From Prasinococcaceae sp. CCMP 1430 (taxonomy: Eukaryota; Plantae; Prasinodermophyta): a stretch of DNA of 25,349 nucleotides. Position numbers and translations under genes: made by a program. Within the stretch, counting starts at the first letter, position 1. Each line of letters begins with the position of its first letter. The notes beneath the pieces are model-generated. The model ran no database searches. It was not told where the DNA came from and saw only the letters and a program-made list of their open reading frames with translations. The stretch covers positions 650,377 to 675,725 of the forward strand of contig RQSC01000032.1 of the NCBI GenBank assembly GCA_013416795.1. Reading direction: 5' to 3'. Positions 215-25,349 of the stretch are shown here, piece after piece.

Positions 215-2943
215 GCGGCCGGCGGCGCCGAGGGCGAGGGGGGCGCTGGCGCGGCCGCGCTCGGGCCGCTGCTCGGGCCGTACGGCGCCGACCTGATCCT
301 CGTGCACAAGGCGTGCGCCATCTGGTCGCCCGAGGTGTACGAGGACGACAACGGGGAGCTCAAGAACATCGAGAAAGCGGTGCGGCGCGGCAGGCACCTG
401 TACTGCTCGTACTGCGGCGAGAAGGGCGCGACGGTCGGCTGCCGCGTCGAGAAGTGCAAGTGCTCCTACCACGTGCTGTGCGCGTACGAGGCGGACTGCC
501 AGCTGGCCAACTGGCTCGTCAGCTGCCCCGACCACGCGGACGCGGCGCACCAGGCCGCCGTCAAGGAGCGCAGGCGGCAGGAGCGCGAGCGCAAGAAACT
601 CGATCGCAAGCGCAAGCGCGGCTCGGCCGCCGCGGCCGATGCGGCCGCCGCTCGCGCGCGGGCGGNTCGGAGGTCGCGTTCTATGCGCGCAAGGGGGCGG
701 ACTGCCTCGGCAAGTTCCACGGCGACGCCGAGCGAGAGCTGCGCCTGCTCTTCGAGCACGCGAGCCAGCACCAGCCGGCGGTCATCTTCTTCGACGAGTT
801 CGACGGGCTGGCCCCTGCGCGCGGAGGGCGCGGCGATTCGGTGCATAGCAGCGTCGTGAGCACGCTCTTGGCACTCATGGACGGCCTGAAGGACCGTGGG
901 CGCGTGGTGGTGCTTGCGGCCACCAATTGCCCGGACGCGCTGGACGCGGCGCTGCGGCGCCCGGGGCGCTTCGACCGCGAGCTGCTCTTCAGTCTGCCCG
1001 CGCGCGCCGATCGCGCGGCGATCCTGCGCGTGCACACGCGCCGCTGGCCGGAGGCGGCGAGGCCCTCCGCTGCGCTGCTCGCGGCGCTCGCGCGCGCGAC
1101 GGAGGGCTTCAGCGCTGCGGAGCTGGCAGCGCTGTGCGCGTCCGCGGTCGTGGTGGCCGCCACGCGGGCGTTTGGCCCCGTGTCCGACCAGGCAGTCGCG
1201 CTCGGGCGAGCCTGCGGCCCCGCCGAGGGCGAATCGGATGCCGGCGGGGCGGAAGCTGGCGGCGACGCTGGCCAACCCTCGCCCGGAGCGGGTGGTCAGG
1301 CGGCGATCGTCGCAAGGCCGCCTGAGGCCGCGTCGTCCGAGGCCCCCGCGCCCGTGCTCGTGTGGGCCAAGGCCAGCGGCTTTCCGTGGTGGCCCGCCGT
1401 CCGCCTACCGCTCGACTCGCCGAGGCTGCCCGCCGGGGCGCGCGCCGCGCGCAAGCCCGGGTGCGCGCTCGTCGAGTTCATCGACAGGGACCGCTCCTGG
1501 GCGTGGCTGCCGTGCGCCGCCGTGCGGCCCTACGCGCCGGGCGCGGACGAGCACGAGGCGATGGCGGCGCAGGCCTCCAAGTCGATTCTGCTGACCGAAG
1601 CTCTCGAGGGCGCCGCCAAGCAACAGGAAAGGCTCGCCGCAAGGGCGAAGCGCGTCGCCGAGCACGCGGCGGCCGCGGCCGAGGAGCGTCGCCGCTCGGA
1701 GGAGGCATCGCGCGCCAAGGAGAGGCGCACGGCGATGGCGAAGGCTGTCGTCGTGCGCCCGCGCGACTGGGCGGCGTCGCTCGCCTCGGCGCCGCCGCCC
1801 TGCGCGCGGCGAGCGGCCGCGGCGAGCGGCCCGCCGGCGCGCAGGCTTCCGCGGTACCTCGCGCCCGCGCTGGCTGCGCCCACCGCTGCGCTGCTTCGCT
1901 CCATGCTGTCGTGGCGCACAGACCTCGGCCCGATGCTTCCAGACGGTCTGCACGAAGGGGCCGACTTGGCCTACCTTGACGCGCTCGATGCCGTCGATCC
2001 CCCGCTCGGCGCACAGCTCGTGGGGGCGGTCGCGGAGGGCGCCGCGCCGCCGAAGGCAGCCGCAGCCGCGAGCGCTCGGGCGCTGAGCGCCTCCGCGCCG
2101 CGGTACACCAGGGCGGCGGCCCTCGCCGCGGCTGCGCTCATGGCCGACGGCGCGCTGGCGCGGACGGACGGTTGCTGGCGAGCGCTCGTTTGCGGCGATG
2201 GGGACCAGGGCCAGCGCGGCGTGGCCTCTGCGGCGCTGGCCGCGCTGCGCGCCGTGCCGTGCGTGATGGCAGATGCAGCGGCGCGCGCCACCGGGGGGGG
2301 CGCCGGCGGGCTGGTGTCGGCCGCCGCGGAGGCGCGCCGACTCGCGGCGTCGAGCGGCATGGCCGTGCTCTTTCTGCCGGACGTGCACACGTGGGCGACT
2401 GCGCCAGTTGGCACGCCCGACGGCGGTGCCGATGCGGTCGGGGGCGCCGATGGCATGCGAGTGGACGCGCCGGTCCCCGACCTCGCCGGCGCGCCGCTCT
2501 CCCAGGAGTGGCAGCTCCTTGAGCAGCAGCTCGAGGGCGCGTGCGTGGCCGTGCTCGCGACGGCATCGGTGCCTCTGGCGGAGGTGCCGCGCTCGCTGTC
2601 GGCGGCCTTCGGCGGCGGCGGCGATGCAGCCGGTGCCAACGGCGCGTCGAACGGCGCCGCAGCGAGCGGTGCGCGGAGCCGGCGCGCCCTGGTGGGCCTG
2701 GGCGCGCTCGAGCCCGCCGACGCGGCTCGCTGCGTGGACGCTGCTGCCTCGGACGTCGCTGCCGCCCTCTCTGCCGCAGGCGTCGCAGACGAGGCGGCGG
2801 GCGGCTGGCGGGCGAAGCTAGCGGCCGTGGGCACGAGCTCCCCTTCATCGGCGGGGGCGCTCGACGATGCCATTGGCGCCGCGCTGCACGGCACTCTCGG
2901 CCCGCTGCGCGCGTCGCTCGGCCTGCGCGCTCCGCCGTCGTGA
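215..2943 (+). CDS. ATAD2/Yta7-family AAA+ ATPase with N-terminal extended PHD finger and PWWP domain (5' truncated; frame change and missing Walker A at n666)
   Basis: 215-665 frame: VHKACAIWSPEVY...CSYCGEKGATVGC...CSYHVLCA (zf-HC5HC2H-like). 667-2943 frame: ARKGADCLGKFHGDAERELRLLF, Walker B IFFDEFDGLAP, VVSTLLALMDGL, AATN, ALRRPGRFDRE; VWAKASGFPWWPA (PWWP); degenerate second AAA module (RALVCGDGDQGQ, VLFLPDVHTW). Stop TGA 2941-2943. Confidence 0.87.
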
Positions 2944-5461: not shown

Positions 5462-8219
5462 TCACGGGCGCCACAGAGACACGCTGCCGTCCGCGCCGCC
5501 TGCGGCGAGTATCATGGGCCCTCCTTGGCCGCCGCATCGAACAGCGGCGGTCACAGAGTGCGGCAGGGTCATCGAGCCCCGCGCAACGACCCTGGCGGGC
5601 CCGTCGAAGTCTGAGTGCACGTGCCACGCCCGCACGCGGCCGTCGGTCGTGGCTGAGATCGCCCCCATATCGCCGGCGGGGAGCATCTGCATCGACGCGT
5701 GCGCACCGCGGCCGACGCCCAGCGATGGCGCCACTGTCCTCTGCGACGCGCCCGCGCCCACGCAGTCCATTGACCACAGCCTCGACGCGCCGGTCTCGTC
5801 GGCACTCAGGATGTGCAAGCGGCCGCTGGTGTCGGCGCACGCCGACACGCCAGTGACCGCGCCGCCGTGGCCCACCAGCACCCGATCCTTTGCGCGGCCG
5901 CCGCTGAGGCGAAACGTGCGCACGCTCCAGTCGCCGCCGCCTGCCACCAGCGTGTCTGAGCTCGGCGCGAGGCCGAGCGAAGTGACCGCGCGCGCGCAGG
6001 CGCCGTGCTCGCGCAGCAGGGGCTCGCTCGAGCGCATGTCCCACGCGTGCACGCCCCCGCTCTGCGTTCCGGTGGCCAGCACCATCCCCCCTCCGGCGGA
6101 GGCTGCGCCGGGCGTCGCCAGCCCCCCGGAGAGGGCGACGGCGGTCACTGGGGAGAATGCGTGGGCACTTGGGGGTTGGGCGCCGAGAGTGATGGGCGGC
6201 GCACAGCGCCAGAATCCGGCGACCTTGCCAGGCGGGCACCGCACGTCCCACACGTACACGCTGCCGCTCGAAGTGCCCACGGCCACGAGCGGCGCCCCGC
6301 CGGGGGCCGTCGCTGCGGCCGTGGCCGTCGTGCTGCGCGCCTCGCGCTCGGGCAGCGAGCTCTTCCAGCTCGTGGCGACCTGCCGGCCTCCGGTCGCGTC
6401 CGCGACGAGCACGCCGCCAGACTGGAGCACGCAAGCGACGCGCCCCTCGTCGATGGCGCCCACGTGGAGTGCGCCAGCGCCGCCCGCGATCGCGATCGAA
6501 CTGGTCGTCGCCCCCTCCTCGCCTTGCCCCAGCCGCGTCAGCGCAAGCGTGTCGTCCTCCGCGCAGCTCGCGAGGACGTCACCGGCGGCGCTCAGCCCGC
6601 ACACCGAGCGGACACGCCCCGCGTGGGCCTTGGCCGTCAACAGGCAGGCCGAGCGGTCTTCGAAGAGCTCGCGTTCGTGCGCCGAGATCGCGCCCTCCTC
6701 CGCCTCGGCATGGGTGCCCCAGCCCGCCTCGTCGCCGTCAGGCTCACCGAGAGAGCACGCGTCGCGCCGCAGCTCGTGCGCGTGCTGGATGGCCGCGCGC
6801 ACGCTCGCGCGCTCGGCGTGCGCCAGAAAGCCGAAGTTCCGCAGGTGGCCGACGATGTCCCAGGCCTGGTCCGCGCCCCAGCCCAGCTCCTGGAGGCACG
6901 CGGCGGCGAGGAGGGCGACCTCTTCCTTGGCCTCGCGCCTGCTGAGAAGCACCCGCAACGTGGCATAGGAATTCCAGGGCTCGCGCGCCATGTCGGCGAG
7001 CAGGCTCCTCCTGGCGAGGCCTCGCCCGTCGGCGCGCGTGAGCAGGCGCGCGCAGCACATGGCGCTCCACAGGGTGTCCCACCGCGCGGCGTTTGTGGCG
7101 AGCGCCGCGAGTCCCGAGAGCGCACGGCTGGCCTCGTCCGCCGCCTGGGGGGCCAGGGCGATCTCCTCGCCCGCTTCGGCCACCGACGCCGCCAGCTCCG
7201 CGTCGGCCAGGGCGGCCTCGTCCGTGCGAGCGAGCGCAGCGGCGAGCGACGCCTCCGCCTCGTCGTCCCCGCCCGCAGCTCGCTCGGCGATGAGCCCTGC
7301 AGCTGCGGTCGCGCGAGCCTCGGGGAGGGGAGGGGCGCATGGCGTGAAGTACTCCACGTCGAAAGCGGGCGCGGGCTCCTCGACAATGCTCTCGAGCCCG
7401 GCCGCCTGCTTGTGCGCGCCCTCATCGACGAAGCCGCCCGCTTCGTACGAGAGGAAGGCCTGCGTGTTGTGCAGCTGCTCGAGAAAGGACTCCGCCTTCT
7501 GCTGGTCCTTGCCCTTTCCGGCGGCCTCGAGCGCCTCGGCACGCTCGCCTCCCACGCGGGGCAGCAGCGTCCGCAGCGCGCGCCCGAACACCGCGCGCAT
7601 GGCCGCCTCGGTAGGCGGGCCTGCGCGCGCGGCGCCGTCGCCCCGCGCAACCAGCGCGTCGCCGAGGCCTCGACGCAGGTGGGTGCGCGTGCGCTTCGGC
7701 AGCGGCAGGAGCTCCCCCCTCGGCCACGTCACCTCGGAGGTGTCCAGGTCGACCTCCACGACGCCGTCGACCGCCCCAAGCTGCAGCCCGTCGGCGTCCG
7801 TCGCCGCGGTGTTGATGAGCCCCATGAGGAAGGGCGTGGGCGCCTCCAGCGCGTCCGCCAGGCTCAGCGGCAGCACTGGAATGTAGACGTGCTGCCACAC
7901 GAGCGGAGCGAGCAGCGAGCGCAGCGCCTCCGCCGCCAGCGTCAGCATCGCTGGCCGCCGCGCTCGCAGGAGCACGCGCCGCTCGAGGAGGCACGCCACC
8001 CACGCGCGCTCCAGGCACGAGGCCGACACCTCCATCAGCGCCGCGAGCGGCGCCTGATGGGAGAGCTGCGCGGCCTCGGCCGCGACGTCGGCGGTGAGCC
8101 GCGGCGCGCGCGGCGGCGGTGCGCACGCCACGACGCGCCTGCCGACCCGCAGGATGCGTTGCGGCCGCCGCTTCGTCGACGCGGCCGCGCCGGCGTCGCC
8201 CTCGCCCGCGTCGACGACG
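5462..8219 (-). CDS. DENN-domain + C-terminal WD40 repeat protein (SCD1/DENND3-like architecture); 5' end in gap
   Basis: cDENN core LLERRVLL...LRSLLAPLVWQHVYIPVLP...EAPTPFLMG; dDENN-like FLEQLHNTQAF; WD repeats (AHAGRVRSV, GSVYVWD, GGVHAWD, GHGGAVTGV, DGRVRAWH, DGSVSLWRP). Frame is open to the N gap at 8220. Confidence 0.88.
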
Positions 8220-8708
8220 NNNNNNNNNNNNNNNNNNNNNNNNNNNNNNNNNNNNNNNNNNNNNNNNNNNNNNNNNNNNNNNNNNNNNNNNNNNNNNNNN
8301 NNNNNNNNNNNNNNNNNNNNNNNNNNNNNNNNNNNNNNNNNNNNNNNNNNNNNNNNNNNNNNNNNNNNNNNNNNNNNNNNNNNNNNNNNNNNNNNNNNNN
8401 NNNNNNNNNNNNNNNNNNNNNNNNNNNNNNNNNNNNNNNNNNNNNNNNNNNNNNNNNNNNNNNNNNNNNGCGCCGCGCGGCGCGCCGCGCGTCCGCAGCG
8501 GCACCGACGCAGCGGCGTTCGAAATCGAAATTTCGGGCGGCGCCGGCCGCGATTCTTTCGCGCGAGGGCAGTGCGGTCGATGAGCGGCCCGCACGGGCGA
8601 AACCGCGGAGCGGAGCTTTTCGGCGCGCGCCCCCCGAAAAGCGCAACCGCGCCGAGCCGGAGCGTGCGCGCCCGATACCCACGTCGCGACGCGAGAGTCT
8701 CCCGTGTG

Positions 8709-9257: not shown

Positions 9258-9719
9258 TGCGCATTCGTCGTGATGCGAAATACATCAATTCGAATAGGAA
9301 AATCTCATCCCTTTCGAATTGATCTGCGCGCACGTCACGCTCCTCCGCAAGGCGCGACGTGCTCCGCCATGTCCTTCTTCACACGGACACAATTTACGGA
9401 ACGAGATGAGGATCACTCGCATTCCGAGTTTTTTGGATTGTGTGGGTTGCTTTGGCTTTCATTTGTTTGGCTGCCGGCCGCAGCCGGGATCCGGATCCTC
9501 TCGATCAACGATATCGCGCCTGCGCCCGGGGTGCGCGCGCGGCGGAACCCGGCACCGGGGCCGGCGCCGGCGCCCCGTGCGGCGCCCCCNCGCCCGCCGC
9601 GCGCCGGCGAGGGGGGGCGAGCAGCCCCTGCCGGCCGCGGCGCCGCCCGCCGGCGGGATTTCCCGATTTCGGAGGGCGGTGCGGCGGGCGCGCGGGATTG
9701 CATCGCGCGCAATGCGTGG

Positions 9720-9780
9720 GTGTATGTGTGCATGTGTGTGTGTGCGTGTGTGTGTGCGTGGGTGTGCGCGCGCGCGTGCG
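9720..9780. repeat. (TG)n/(CG)n alternating purine-pyrimidine microsatellite
   Basis: tgtatgtgtgcatgtgtgtgtgtgcgtgtg...gcgcgcgcgcgtgcg, upstream of the ATG at 9831. Confidence 0.9.
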
Positions 9781-9830
9781 GGTGGCACACCTCGCACCCA
9801 GCGCACACACCCACACCCCACACAGTCACC

Positions 9831-9932
9831 ATGGCCGCCATCACCTCCTCCTTCATGGGCGCCGCCGTGCAGGCGAAGGCCGTGCGCAAGGCGCAGGCCT
9901 CGAAGCAGCTCGCCGTGCGCGCCGACATCTAG
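9831..9932 (+). pseudogene. Lhcp: Truncated Lhcp first exon: transit peptide only (MAAITSSFMGAAVQAKAVRKAQASKQLAVRADI*)
   Basis: 9822-9874 is identical to 16645-16697, and 9875-9931 is identical to the complement of 16698-16754. It stops at TAG where the paralog has TAC CCG + donor. No LHC body follows. Confidence 0.8.
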
Positions 9933-10664
9933 CGGCGCGTGTGTGGCGCACCTCGCCGCGCCGGCGCGGGCGCGAGCGCGAGCGCCGTGCGGAATCCATA
10001 TGGCAATATAGATGACACAAGACCTTGCAAATGGATTCCTTTTTAATTGAATTCGTCGGATTTGAAGGATTCCTTTTGGAACCACGTCTTATCGGGAACG
10101 GGTGTCCCACGAGTGACCGCCGCGAGGGCGGCGGCGGGGGCGCGGCGGGGGGCCACACTGCGCCCCCCCCACCTCGCTCGTGTCCCCCCTCCCCGCCTCT
10201 GCTGCGGCTGCGGGGGGGGAGAGGTGCCGTGCGTGTGCGTGTCGCGCGCGCGGGCGCGAATCACCACATTTCAATTCCGTCGTTTACCTGTTCACGCCCT
10301 ACATTTCACGTGCCTTCATTCCGTTGCGTGAGGGTTCTGTCGCGGGGACTCCGCGAAAACCCCCGCGGCCGGCCCGGCGCGCCCCCCCCCTCCCGCGCGG
10401 CCGAGGCGGGGGGCGCGCGGCGCGATACCATATTTAAGGTTGAGGCCTTCGAAGGGAGGGTCTACGCGACACGTCGAAACGCACCCGCGCGCGCGCGCGC
10501 GCGCGCGCGCGGATGCGCGGCGNCTCACACACCAGCACCATCGCCGTCGCTGTGGGCGCATGTATAAACAATTAGTGTGACATTGACTACGCGTACTGCA
10601 CGCAGCGGTGCGCGCCACGCAAGGATGCGACCGACCCAAAAGACGCTGCTACAGGAGCATGCCG

Positions 10665-12536: not shown

Positions 12537-12864
12537 CGGCCGGTTGTTGTACTCTTACGTGTATCATGTGAACACCGGCTCGGCGAGCGCCGCGCACCAC
12601 GTCCTCGCCCGCGCCGCCGCGCGCGCGGTCCCGCGTCGAGCCCCTGCGCTCGCCGCCGCCGCCCGCGCCTCTCCGCACGCCCGAGCCGTACACCTCGAGG
12701 CCGCCAGCGAAGGCCTCGACGCCCGCGCCGCCGCCCCTCCGTCCCCCCCTCTTGTACACACACACCGTCAGCTTCCTGAACAGGTTCCGCCCGACGCTCG
12801 CACACGCGCACCATCATCCGAGTTCGGACGGGCGCGCGGCGCCTCAAACGGAATCCATAGCTGA

Positions 12865-12914
12865 TTTGGAGCCCGGAGGGCTCCAAACACAGGTTGGAGC
12901 CCGGAGGGCTAACC
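12865..12914. promoter_or_regulatory. Tandem palindromic element upstream of RUVBL1 (17-nt direct repeat, each copy a GGA-loop hairpin)
   Basis: TTGGAGCCCGGAGGGCT at 12866-12882 and 12894-12910; first copy forms a perfect 10-bp stem TTTGGAGCCC/GGGCTCCAAA. Regulatory role is not shown. Confidence 0.45.
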
Positions 12915-13000
12915 CTTTTTTTTCACCTATTTCCCGCAGTGGGCGCCGGGGGCGCTCGGACGGCGCCGGCAGCGACGCGCGCGGCGGCGGCGCGCGCGNC

Positions 13001-14939
<1,939 letters not shown>

Positions 14940-15275: not shown

Positions 15276-16528
15276 TCACTTCTTGGAGAGCTCCTCCTCG
15301 ATCGCCTTCCACGCCACCGAGAACACCATGGACTGCATGATGTTGGTGAGGAGGCGCGTCTGCAGGCCGCGGCCGAAGAGCGCAAGAATGCCGTCCTTCT
15401 GGACGACCTGCTGCACGGCCCCGATGTACGACAGGCTGGCATCGGGCGAGGTCTGCTTGACGGTCTTGATGACGCGCAGCGAGTTGGACACGCAATCCGA
15501 CACGGCGGCGGCGCAGATGCCGATGCCGGCGTTGCGCACGAGCTTCATCTTGCCTTCAGCCTGAGGCACCGCCTCCTGCAGGGCGTTGAACTGTGTGTGC
15601 GCGTGGGGGAGGCGCGGGGCGGGCGCGCGCGCGACGAGCGTCAGGAGGAGTTCGCGAGTGGGTTTCCGCTCGCACGAGTGCGCGCATGCCCGCGCGCACG
15701 TACAGTCGCGAACCAGGGGTAGTTGCCCACCCAGTTGGCGGCGAAGCTAGCCGCGGCACCACTGTAGAGCACGCCGATGCCGCCCTTGGCCACCTTCTGG
15801 TTGAGCAGCTGCACCGCCTTAGCGCCCTGCACCTGCATCGTGGTCTTGTACGTGTCCACGGGCATGATGAAGATGCGCCACGTGGCGCCGCCCACCGATG
15901 CGAATGCTGTCTTGATGCCGATCGCTGCGCCAGGGAAGTACGCGTCGGCGATCGCAAGGATGCCCTGGTTGGCCGCGGTGTCGCCGAAGCGCGAGAGCGG
16001 GTTCTGCACGACGGCGAACTGCACGCCCTTGTAGAAGCGGCCGATACCGCCGAGCGTCGCCGCCATGCCCGACTTACCCGCCGCGCCCTCGGCGTACAGC
16101 GCCGAGAGTGCCGACGTCATGTTGCCGCCGTTCATGTACTGGTAGTTCATGGTCGTGCGCAGCCACATGAAGGTAAACACCTGGATGACGCCGGCGGCGA
16201 AGCCCGCCACGCCACCGCGGAAGGCCTTTTTTGACGCGGCCGCCATTACGGCGCCAAAGTCCACCTCCGGCTTCTCGGGTTCCGGCTCCGGCTCAGGCTC
16301 CTTCTTCTTCCTCGCAGCGATCTCGTCGATTGCCTGGTTCGCCGGCGCGCCGGTCGACACGAGAATGGCCTTGCGCATCGACCCCGACTTGCGTGCGCGG
16401 CGGCCGCGCACCTTCCGGACACCGAGCCGGCAGCACGGGGCGCAGAGCGAGGCGAGGGGGAACGCGAGGAGCGCGATCCGCCCGTGGCAAAGCATGCGTG
16501 CGACATGCGAGGCGCACGCGTGCGGCAT
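15276..16528 (-). CDS. Mitochondrial carrier family (SLC25) protein with N-terminal extension; exons 16528-15704 and 15590-15276
   Basis: MPVDTYKT signature (PxDxxK), RFYKGV, LYSGAAA, SNSLRVIKT, LFGRGL three-repeat pattern. Intron 15703-15591 is GTACGT...CCTGAC...CAG, phase 0. Start codon uncertain. Confidence 0.9.
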
Positions 16529-16653
16529 GGTGAGGGGTGGGCGATGGGGTCAGGTAGGATAAGCAGGCGCGACGCGCGGGGCGCGATGCTGCGTGGCGCG
16601 GCGCGGCGCCGACGCGCCACACTGCACTCAGCAGCAGCCTCCCTACAGTCACC

Positions 16654-17821
16654 ATGGCCGCCATCACCTCCTCCTTCATGGGCGCCGCCGTGCAGGCCTT
16701 CCGGCACGCGTTCCGCGTCCGGAGCTTCGTCGAGCGGCACGCGCGGCTGTAGATGGGCCACGCACGAGCGGCCGCGCGAGCGCTTGCGCGGGCGGGCATG
16801 TGAGCGCGGCGCGCACGAGTCGGGAAGGGGATGGGGGAGCGCGCAGGCGAGCGGCGGCGCTGCGGAGCGCGGCACGCGCGCGCAGCTGTCGCGGCCATCG
16901 CGGCTGGCGCCCGCCATTGGGCTGGGCTGCTAGAGCGCCACTCGGATGCGCGCCGGTGCAAGGCTTGGCGGCGCAATCGATGGCTGTGGCGCGCGGGCCC
17001 GCCAACGCCGCTCGCGCTCGCTCGCTGGTGCCACAGCCGCGATCGACGCGAGGCCCGACGGCCCCGACGGCGCGCATCGCCGCTTTTGCGCGTGGGACAC
17101 TCGGCCCGACCGTGACCGCGCGGCGTGCCTGGCACCGCCTCGCCGCTCCCCTCTCCGGCGTGCAAAAGTGTGCTGCAATCAATCGGGCGCTGACTCCCCC
17201 GCCCTCTTCCGCGCCCCCTCGCAGGAGTTCGGCACGTACCCGGGCGGCGGCGAGTCGCCGATCATGCCCTTCTCGGAGGAGAAGAACGCCGAGCGCGAGA
17301 TCATCCACGGCCGCTTCGCCATGCTCGGCGTGACCGGCGCGTGGGCCTCGGAGAACGGCACCGGCATCCCCTGGTTCGAGGCGGGCGCCCTGTGCACCCC
17401 CGACGACTGCACCGCCATCGCGGACAAGTTCCCGGGCGCCGTCGCGCCGCTGGCCCCGGAGGGCTCCGGCTACCCGTCGTTCGCGGCCGTGCTGGGCATT
17501 GAGATCGTCCTCATGGGCCTGGCCGAGGGCTACCGCACCGGCGTGGTGGACCCGGCGTTCGACGAGCTCACCGTCGGCGACGCCAACCCGGGCGGCCGCT
17601 TCGACCCCCTCAACCTGTCGGAGTCGAACGACCTCGAGGAGCTGAAGATCAAGGAGCTCAAGCACTGCCGCCTCGCCATGTTCGCGTGGAACGGCTGCAT
17701 CAACCAGGCCATCGTCACCAAGGAGGGCCCCATCGCCAACTGGTCCGCGCACGTCGCCGACCCCATCCACGAGAACATCATGGCGCCGGGCTTCTGCAAG
17801 GTGAAGTGGGACATGACGTAG
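16654..17821 (+). CDS. Lhcp: Prasinophyte-type light-harvesting chlorophyll-binding protein; exon 1 16654-16758 (16698 onward is written as complement), exon 2 17225-17821
   Basis: Exon 2: EFGTYPGGGESP, EREIIHGRFAMLG, LCTPDDC, KELKHCRLAM. Acceptor CAG 17222-17224 with branch GCTGAC 17189. Decoded exon 1 ends ...VRADIYP|GTGCGT, giving the ADIYPEFGTYPGG junction as I recall it from prasinophyte Lhcp. Confidence 0.95.
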
Positions 17822-18149
17822 GTGATTTACGGAGCGCGTGCCTCCCCGCCGCCGCTTGGATTCGACCACCGCGGCCGCGCCGCGCGTTTTTTGCCAGGGC
17901 GCCACTAGCAGCAGAGCAGTGACGGAATAACGCAGCTCCCTTGTTCTTTACACAACAGATGTGTGGGAGGCGGCCCGCCGTGGGTGGGGGGGGTGGGGGG
18001 CGCATGTGCTGCGCAGGCCGCGGCGGGCGCACGCGACGCGCGTGGGCGCGGGTGCGTGCGGAGGTGGGAGGGGTATCCGGCCCGTCCGCGCACACGAGCG
18101 GCGCGACCGGTCCTGCGACGCGCAACGCATTGGTAGCGAGGTGGCGCGC

Positions 18150-23933: not shown

Positions 23934-24695
23934 TCAATTGAAGAAGTAGAGCTTGAGGCCGACCGCGAGGCCGGCGTGCGCGGCGCAGACCGCAACCAGC
24001 GCCGACCTCCTCGCGGCCGCCGCCGGGGCGCCAGCGACGACGTCGCGCGCGTTGGACACCAGAAAGAGCGTCGACTGCGCGCCCGCGACGGAGATCGCGA
24101 TCCACTCCACCACGTGGGACGGCACCACGCAAATCACGGCGGTCGGCACGAATATGGCCAGCGAGTAGCCGTAGATGCAGGCCAGCTGCGAGAGGAAAGG
24201 CGCCGCGCCGTGCCAGCGCAGGTACAGATACAGCACCAGCGGGGCCACCGTGGCGTACCCGTACCACAGGACAGCCGAGAGGGCGACCTTCTTGATGTCG
24301 ACGAACCAGTCGCTGTCGTCGCTCGTGTGCTTCAGGTACGCGGCGAAATTGCCAGCCATCGCCGAGAGGAACACCAGCGTGGTGCAGATCCAGAACGGCC
24401 CGTACAGGTCAGGGCGCTCCACAGTGGCCTCGGCGAACTTCGGTCGCAGAGGCGTGAAAGTCGACGTGACCGCGGCCATGCGCACCCGCTGGGTGATGTC
24501 GCTCGTGTCGAAGTCGAAGTATCTCGCCCATCCCGAGGGCGTGAAGAGCGATCCGCCGCGCCCACCGCCGCCGCCGCCGCCGCCGCCGCCATCCGACGGC
24601 TGCTGGCCGGACAGGAAACCGCTGCGCTCGTTGTCCCCTCCCGTGATGCCCGTGGCGGCCGCCGTGGCCAGGCTGCCCACCAGCCCCGCGAATGC
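23934..24695 (-). CDS. Yip1-domain protein (YIPF1/2-like), 5' end missing
   Basis: RYFDFDT, RPDLYGPFWICTTLVF, LACIYGYSLAIFVP, multiple TM segments, ends KLYFFN*; poly-Gly from a (CCG)n tract. Confidence 0.91.
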   Translation of the reverse strand, partial: AFAGLVGSLATAAATGITGGDNERSGFLSGQQPSDGGGGGGGGGGRGGSLFTPSGWARYFDFDTSDITQRVRMAAVTSTFTPLRPKFAEATVERPDLYGPFWICTTLVFLSAMAGNFAAYLKHTSDDSDWFVDIKKVALSAVLWYGYATVAPLVLYLYLRWHGAAPFLSQLACIYGYSLAIFVPTAVICVVPSHVVEWIAISVAGAQSTLFLVSNARDVVAGAPAAAARRSALVAVCAAHAGLAVGLKLYFFN

Positions 24696-24779
24696 GCCGC
24701 CGAGAGCTACTTCGACAAGTTCTGGTCCAACGGTGACATGACCGAGCGCTTCTTCGTGGTCGTCAAGGCACGCGCGTAG
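24696..24779 (+). CDS. Orphan 3' end of an unidentified plus-strand gene (AAESYFDKFWSNGDMTERFFVVVKARA*)
   Basis: Strongly host-like codons ending in TAG, followed by an AT-richer 3'UTR-like stretch; the upstream frame is antisense to Yip1. Confidence 0.45.
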   Translation, partial: AAESYFDKFWSNGDMTERFFVVVKARA

Positions 24780-25349
24780 CGCCGCACGCGCCAATTGTAC
24801 AGTAAGTAGTAGGATGTGTACACTGGTGGTGGTGGGGGGGGGGGCGCACCTACGCCGCCTCGACGGCAGAAGCTCTCTCTGAGGCCTCCGCGAGGCTGGC
24901 GGTGCGCCCTTCGGCGACTGGCGCCGCGCCCTGCGCGCCGCCGAGAATGGCTGTCGCGGACGCGTGCGCGCGCAGGCACGGACTGGCACCGACGTCACGG
25001 TTTCCATTCCGGGTCGTATTTGGGGACCCTTTCGAAGCGGCCGTCCGGCGATCAGTTCGGGTTAAAATACGTAGAGTAATATGGGTCAGAATCACTCTAG
25101 GGTTCAAATTGCAATTCATTCCTGCGCGCAGCACAAACGGACGGGCGGACGTGGTGTGCCCTCGGTCGGATCGCCCTGCAACGGAGCAGGTGCGAGCTGC
25201 TTCAGGGCGGCCGGGGGCGCGGGGGAGGGGCTCAGCGGCGGGTCTCCCTCCCCTCTCGCTCTCGCCTCGCGCGGTCTGCTCTGCCTCGATGCGCGCGCCG
25301 CGCAGCGCGCCTCTCGCCGCCTCGTCGACGACGGCGGCGGCGTCCGCGG

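Follow-up and report, generated by a model that had tools for sequence, protein, structure and literature searches.

Segments whose strand identity differs from that of their flanks are a feature of chromosomal inversions, which leave the reverse complement of the ancestral sequence at the inverted site. A number of other situations give rise to text that is complemented or mirrored without being both. The opposite strand of a natural mirror repeat, as found in the homopurine/homopyrimidine tracts that form H-DNA, reads as a reversed, non-complemented copy, and such repeats are short and of low complexity. In colour-space sequencing with two-base encoding of the SOLiD type, a sequence and its complement share one colour string; a single wrong or miscalled colour complements all downstream bases, without reversal, until a second error occurs. 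Strand-handling bugs in software, where reversal or complementation is applied alone, can turn a block into its base-by-base complement in place and collinear with its flanks, with unchanged length and sharp junctions, although they usually affect whole records or contigs. To our knowledge there is no polymerase, and no replication or repair pathway, that synthesises DNA parallel to its template, and in the literature nothing relevant was found on complement-only or reverse-only assembly errors.

The locus described here lies in a stretch of 25,349 nucleotides, referred to below as the window, from the prasinodermophyte alga Prasinococcaceae sp. CCMP 1430 (GenBank assembly GCA_013416795.1, contig RQSC01000032.1, positions 650,377 to 675,725 of the forward strand). 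In window coordinates its genes and gene fragments are:

313-2940, plus strand: AAA ATPase with a PWWP domain
5465-8158, minus strand: DENN/WD40 protein
9822-9931, plus strand: truncated second Lhcp copy (paralog A), 110 nt in normal orientation, i.e. 9 nt of 5' leader and the first 101 nt of the CDS
13000-13857, plus strand: RuvBL1 fragment
15279-16411, minus strand: mitochondrial carrier, two exons
16654-17827, plus strand: Lhcp
23937-25007, minus strand: Yip1-domain protein

Comparison of the window with itself reproduces an observation of the initial annotation, i.e. that the Lhcp gene at 16654-17827 passes within its first exon into its own complement. Positions 16645-16697 are identical to 9822-9874 of the truncated copy (53/53). 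Directly beyond this match, and collinear with it, every base of 16698-16754 is the complement of its counterpart in 9875-9931 read in the same direction (57/57). This 57-nt match is not due to chance. When the window was compared with its own complement, reverse and reverse complement, it was the sole same-direction complement match outside low-complexity sequence, the runners-up in the whole-window search being GC-rich and 20 nt or shorter; in 20 composition-preserving block shuffles of the window the longest complement match was 14-19 nt, against 57 nt in the real sequence. No reverse-complement relation was found for 16698-16754, either in the window self-search or in the comparison with the environmental contigs described below.

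Independent copies of the gene are available from 14 Tara Oceans and other marine metagenome contigs that carry Lhcp with its intron (L002-L015, obtained by exact-protein look-ups) and from one spliced environmental transcript of a close relative (L001). These were compared by BLAST with the window as written and with its complement, and two of the contigs (L003 and L009) were then compared ungapped, position by position, with the following result:

16645-16697: identical as written
16698-16764 (block 1, 67 nt): 67/67 complement
16765-17801: identical as written except for a few SNPs
17802-17856 (block 2, 55 nt exactly): 55/55 complement
from 17857: matching as written once more

Block 2, which was overlooked in the initial annotation, spans the last codons and the stop of the gene and is a 55/55 complement of all 14 contigs, with the ungapped register verified position by position in L003 and L009; block 1 is evident in the five contigs that reach exon 1. 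The transcript L001 shows the same switches together with the spliced junction GACATCTACCCC/GAGTTC. All 14 contigs and the transcript thus have normal sequence at the blocks that they cover, as does the published protein discussed below, though the contigs represent wild populations and not the sequenced strain, and are strictly compatible with a strain-specific change.

Each block is bounded by sharp single-position junctions (16697/16698, 16764/16765, 17801/17802 and 17856/17857), and the flanks on both sides are identical to the contigs as written, barring a few SNPs. At the first junction the window reads GTGCAGGC/CTTCCGG, the normal form being GTGCAGGC/GAAGGCC. The blocks are therefore in-place, collinear, same-direction complements with correct flanks, and they differ from the product of a chromosomal inversion in that base order is kept throughout (67/67 and 55/55 in the same direction); neither block is a reverse-complemented version of the ancestral sequence. 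They also differ from natural mirror repeats in consisting of complex coding, intron and UTR sequence, of which they are exact wild-type transforms.

The environmental contigs also fix the extent of block 1. It had been proposed to continue to at least 16840, with the switch back somewhere before 17189; it ends at 16764, and from 16765 onward the window is right as written in comparison with L003 and L009. Accordingly the C-rich intron start that was obtained by decoding this region has to be given up, since GGGAAGGGGATGGGGG at 16822-16837 is genuine as written and present in L009, and the true intron start is G-rich. With only the two blocks complemented, the gene is made up as follows:

16654-16697, plus strand: first part of exon 1, correct as written, with the ATG at 16654; identical to the paralog at 9831-9874 and to L003 and L009
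16698-16764, no strand assigned: block 1, which decodes to the final 61 nt of exon 1, ending at 16758, plus the donor GTGCGT (16759-16764)
16765-17224, plus strand: rest of the intron, correct as written, with the acceptor CAG at 17222-17224; L003 and L009 match with scattered SNPs
17225-17801, plus strand: exon 2, correct as written, encoding the chlorophyll a/b-binding domain; L002-L015 match over the parts that they cover, with few SNPs
17802-17856, no strand assigned: block 2, decoded as (G)AC TTC ACC CTG TAC TGC ATC CAC TAA and then the beginning of the 3' UTR

As written, exon 1 encodes MAAITSSFMGAAVQAFRHAFRVRSFVERHARL followed by a premature stop and is without a donor, as had been noted initially. 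Once decoded it reads MAAITSSFMGAAVQAKAVRKAQASKQLAVRADIYP and then GTGCGT, so that the end of the exon, QLAVRADIYP/GTGCGT, joins in frame to EFGTYPGG, and the expected spliced junction is GACATCTACCCG/GAGTTC. The YP codons, the donor and the in-frame join had been predicted from the window, and they agree with the junction in L001 and with the published protein; the true intron, 16759-17224, is absent from the spliced transcript. At the other end of the gene, block 2 converts the C-terminus FCKDFTLYCIH and its stop into FCKVKWDMT and a stop, changing the last eight residues and moving the stop codon, whose true position is 17825-17827. The decoded CDS (16654-16758 joined to 17225-17827) has a product of 235 amino acids that is 100% identical to residues 16-250 of PRCOL_00001426-RA (P0126), a protein of the published Prasinoderma coloniale annotation. 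That protein carries the decoded N-terminus MAAITSSFMGAAVQAKAVRKAQASKQLAVRADIYPEFGTYPGG and ends in FCKDFTLYCIH, and the decoded C-terminus matches that of both P0126 and P0125.

The identity of the gene as a member of the prasinophyte Lhcp type is apparent already from exon 2 as written, which matches PF00504 (E=9.5e-24, 85 bits against a cut-off of 22.3) and whose product has prasinophyte Lhcp proteins as its closest relatives, with full-length similarity to annotated Lhcp. Identity to a "prasinophyte specific chlorophyll a/b-binding protein" of Micromonas commoda (P0006) is 82%, and the 90% cluster of the best match holds three published Prasinoderma coloniale proteins. The real gene is thus confirmed as an ordinary, intact two-exon Lhcp gene with the decoded structure. 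The alternative N-terminus of a further Prasinoderma model, PRCOL_00001429-RA (MEASGRGSGGRG), was searched for in the window and is not encoded there, so this model could not be tied to the locus.

The sequence immediately 5' of the gene, 16597-16644, is unlike every locus type among the Tara contigs. It reads HTALSSSLPTVTM in frame, L002, L004 and PRCOL_00001426-RA read CHTAPAATPPTVTM, and the truncated copy A differs again. The copy with this flank is either a third paralog or the site of a further local assembly error.

The scaffold that holds the gene is visibly poor in other respects. The window contains runs of 100, 250, 331 and 926 Ns, plus six single Ns (at 666, 3861, 9590, 10523, 12999 and 18895), of which the one at 12999 sits exactly at the join of unrelated sequences; in this assembly such isolated Ns may stand for contig joins at which sequence is missing, and not for ambiguous calls. 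The truncated Lhcp copy ends in an N-free misjoin at 9931/9932, immediately after the 110 nt that are common to both Lhcp copies. Contig L009 is exactly the same as the window over 9784-9931 and then continues as a complete gene, the window diverging at 9932, and the join looks like a collapsed-repeat misjoin. The unrelated sequence beyond the break includes AT-rich stretches (about 9990-10100 and 10270-10340) that are unusual for a genome of about 70% GC.

The RuvBL1 (TIP49) gene is likewise incomplete, with only residues 88-376 present. Its sequence at 13000-13857 is 99.3% identical at the nucleotide level to Tara contig L016 and is bounded by the single N at 12999 on the left and by an N-free break at 13857/13858 on the right; the missing N-terminal ~87 and C-terminal ~80 residues were searched for in the window in any orientation and base permutation and are absent from it. 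The long ORF around this piece (12752-14650) runs on through unrelated sequence on both sides. The published assembly of Prasinoderma coloniale, produced with PacBio reads, consists of 22 chromosomes and is gap-free, so the window must belong to another assembly, one of draft grade, of this organism or a near-identical one. The Tara MAG study used MEGAHIT, and neither this nor the published genome fits a gap-ridden assembly of at least 184 pieces.

No further complement blocks were found by comparison with homologs in about 4.7 kb of single-copy genes of the window. This includes the RuvBL1 piece (13000-13857), the mitochondrial-carrier exons (15279-15590 and 15650-16411) and, at low resolution given a homolog of just 44% identity, the DENN/WD40 gene (5465-8158). 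The latter encodes a long single-exon protein with a DENN domain and a WD40 beta-propeller, and its sole database relative at E<=1e-20 is a protein of 1096 residues, 44% identical, that is encoded on a marine metagenome contig of 13.9 kb; the N run at 8220-8469, or sequence past it, would hold the N-terminal portion of the DENN domain. A reference-free detector was also tried that follows the sign of the G/C skew at codon positions, on the reasoning that the RNY pattern is the same on either strand and flips under in-place complementation. Its candidate at 7660-8010 was rejected, the DENN domain there being homologous as written, and the detector itself was set aside as too noisy at lengths of 55-67 nt, having missed both real blocks.

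Taken together, these observations indicate that the complement-only text is almost certainly an error of this draft assembly and not a feature of the DNA. Normal sequence is found in many independent samples and in the published proteome, the blocks are perfect complements within a gene that is otherwise intact, unlike a decaying pseudogene, and the scaffold shows N runs, single Ns, misjoins and a partial RuvBL1 gene; no replication or repair process is known that would produce a complement in the same direction. That the gene contains two blocks, and the scaffold misjoins as well, shows that the fault is not a solitary one. The suggestion made at the outset, that complementation without reversal had occurred in assembly or gap filling, is thereby borne out by the 14 contigs, the L001 transcript, the 100% match to P0126 and the other scaffold faults. 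The best explanation is that two pieces of an ordinary Lhcp gene were put into the scaffold with the wrong strand operation, to which we assign a probability of roughly 0.9. A piece in minus orientation would have been reversed without being complemented, or a piece would have been complemented without being reversed; either slip would leave it at its proper position and in register with its flanks, each base being exchanged for its complement.

As to how such a slip came about, a specific mechanism can be put forward at about even odds, namely a strand-handling bug acting on small units of a de Bruijn-type graph. The affected pieces would be such units within a multi-copy gene, and the bug would be located in the step that prints or joins them, i.e. 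in contig joining, scaffolding or gap filling. Unlike the usual strand-handling error, the one seen here is confined to segments a few tens of bases long that are flanked by correct sequence, a pattern suggestive of a unit-level bug in graph traversal, scaffolding or gap filling. The two blocks belong to a multi-copy gene whose copies share about 1.2 kb. Block 2 is exactly 55 nt long, 55 being a common k-mer size, and it ends at 17856. The adjoining site, 17857, varies between gene copies or strains, with differences in L002, L007, L009 and L015, and 17856 is also the exact endpoint of three independent Tara contigs (L003, L004 and L005). The length of block 2 together with its end at a divergence point suggests a de Bruijn branch vertex with k=55, and the sequence shared by the truncated paralog, at exactly 110 nt, is 2 x 55. 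We infer the graph-unit origin from this block length, the branch-point end, the multi-copy location and the 110-nt paralog. Block 1 begins 53 nt into the stretch shared with copy A and 57 nt into that shared with the L002/L004 type, so its limits need k=53 or k=57 rather than 55, and for this block the graph-unit model is tentative.

Other origins for the error have to be weighed against the wrong strand operation in assembly. A decoding error of colour-space (SOLiD-type) data between two miscalled colours would complement a stretch in place and in register, with each switch falling sharply at a single position, as is seen at all four junctions, but it should also have produced blocks of the two other permutation types (A<->C/G<->T or A<->G/C<->T) and blocks of random length. 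Neither was seen: no such permuted blocks matched the contigs or proteins over the few kb that are testable, and a comparison of the base-permuted window with L001-L016 (a nucleotide reference that covers about 2.5 kb of the window) and the RuvBL1 end pieces gave only low-complexity (GT)n matches at 9704-9780. The exact 55-nt length and the branch-point end of block 2 are unexpected from random colour errors, and there is no sign that the alga was ever sequenced in this way, the published data being PacBio and Illumina; a colour-space origin is hence very unlikely. File handling after assembly is another unlikely source, e.g. a case-sensitive complement operation by which soft-masked segments were only reversed, or a later and possibly deliberate edit. 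Blocks complemented in place, irregular in length and preferentially in repeats would result from this as well, and both blocks are in a multi-copy gene. However, the window sequence is without case information, repeat masking would extend over all of the repeated gene of about 1.2 kb rather than 67 and 55 nt, and a length of exactly 55 nt with an end at a graph branch point is more in keeping with an assembler unit.

A biological origin, in which a strain-specific rearrangement copied DNA as its parallel complement and left this Lhcp copy a pseudogene, would account for the window text, in which the premature stop and the lack of a donor are as expected of a dead copy. It had been raised initially as a mirror-copying event of an unknown kind, and it has no support beyond that text. 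No polymerase or repair pathway known to us copies in parallel; the gene is intact outside the blocks, with an exon 2 protein that is 100% identical to the published one, and a pseudogene would not stay so clean; the blocks match the complement of the wild-type sequence at every position (100%); and the independent contigs are normal, whereas plain assembly faults occur on the same scaffold. Such a rearrangement is accordingly extremely improbable, and the chance that the sequenced strain truly carries same-direction complement ("parallel-copied") patches is, if anything, smaller still. If true, such patches would imply an unknown templating process that writes the partner base in the same 5' to 3' order.

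With the wrong strand operation as the preferred explanation, the locus holds no biological novelty, and the value of the finding is in the curation of this assembly. Complement-only patches create false stops, abolish splice sites and alter protein ends, and they leave length and GC content unchanged, so that standard quality checks are blind to them. Gene prediction, pseudogene calls and variant analysis based on this assembly are consequently at risk, and it is advisable to assign further "mirror" findings in this genome to this artefact class unless reads contradict it.
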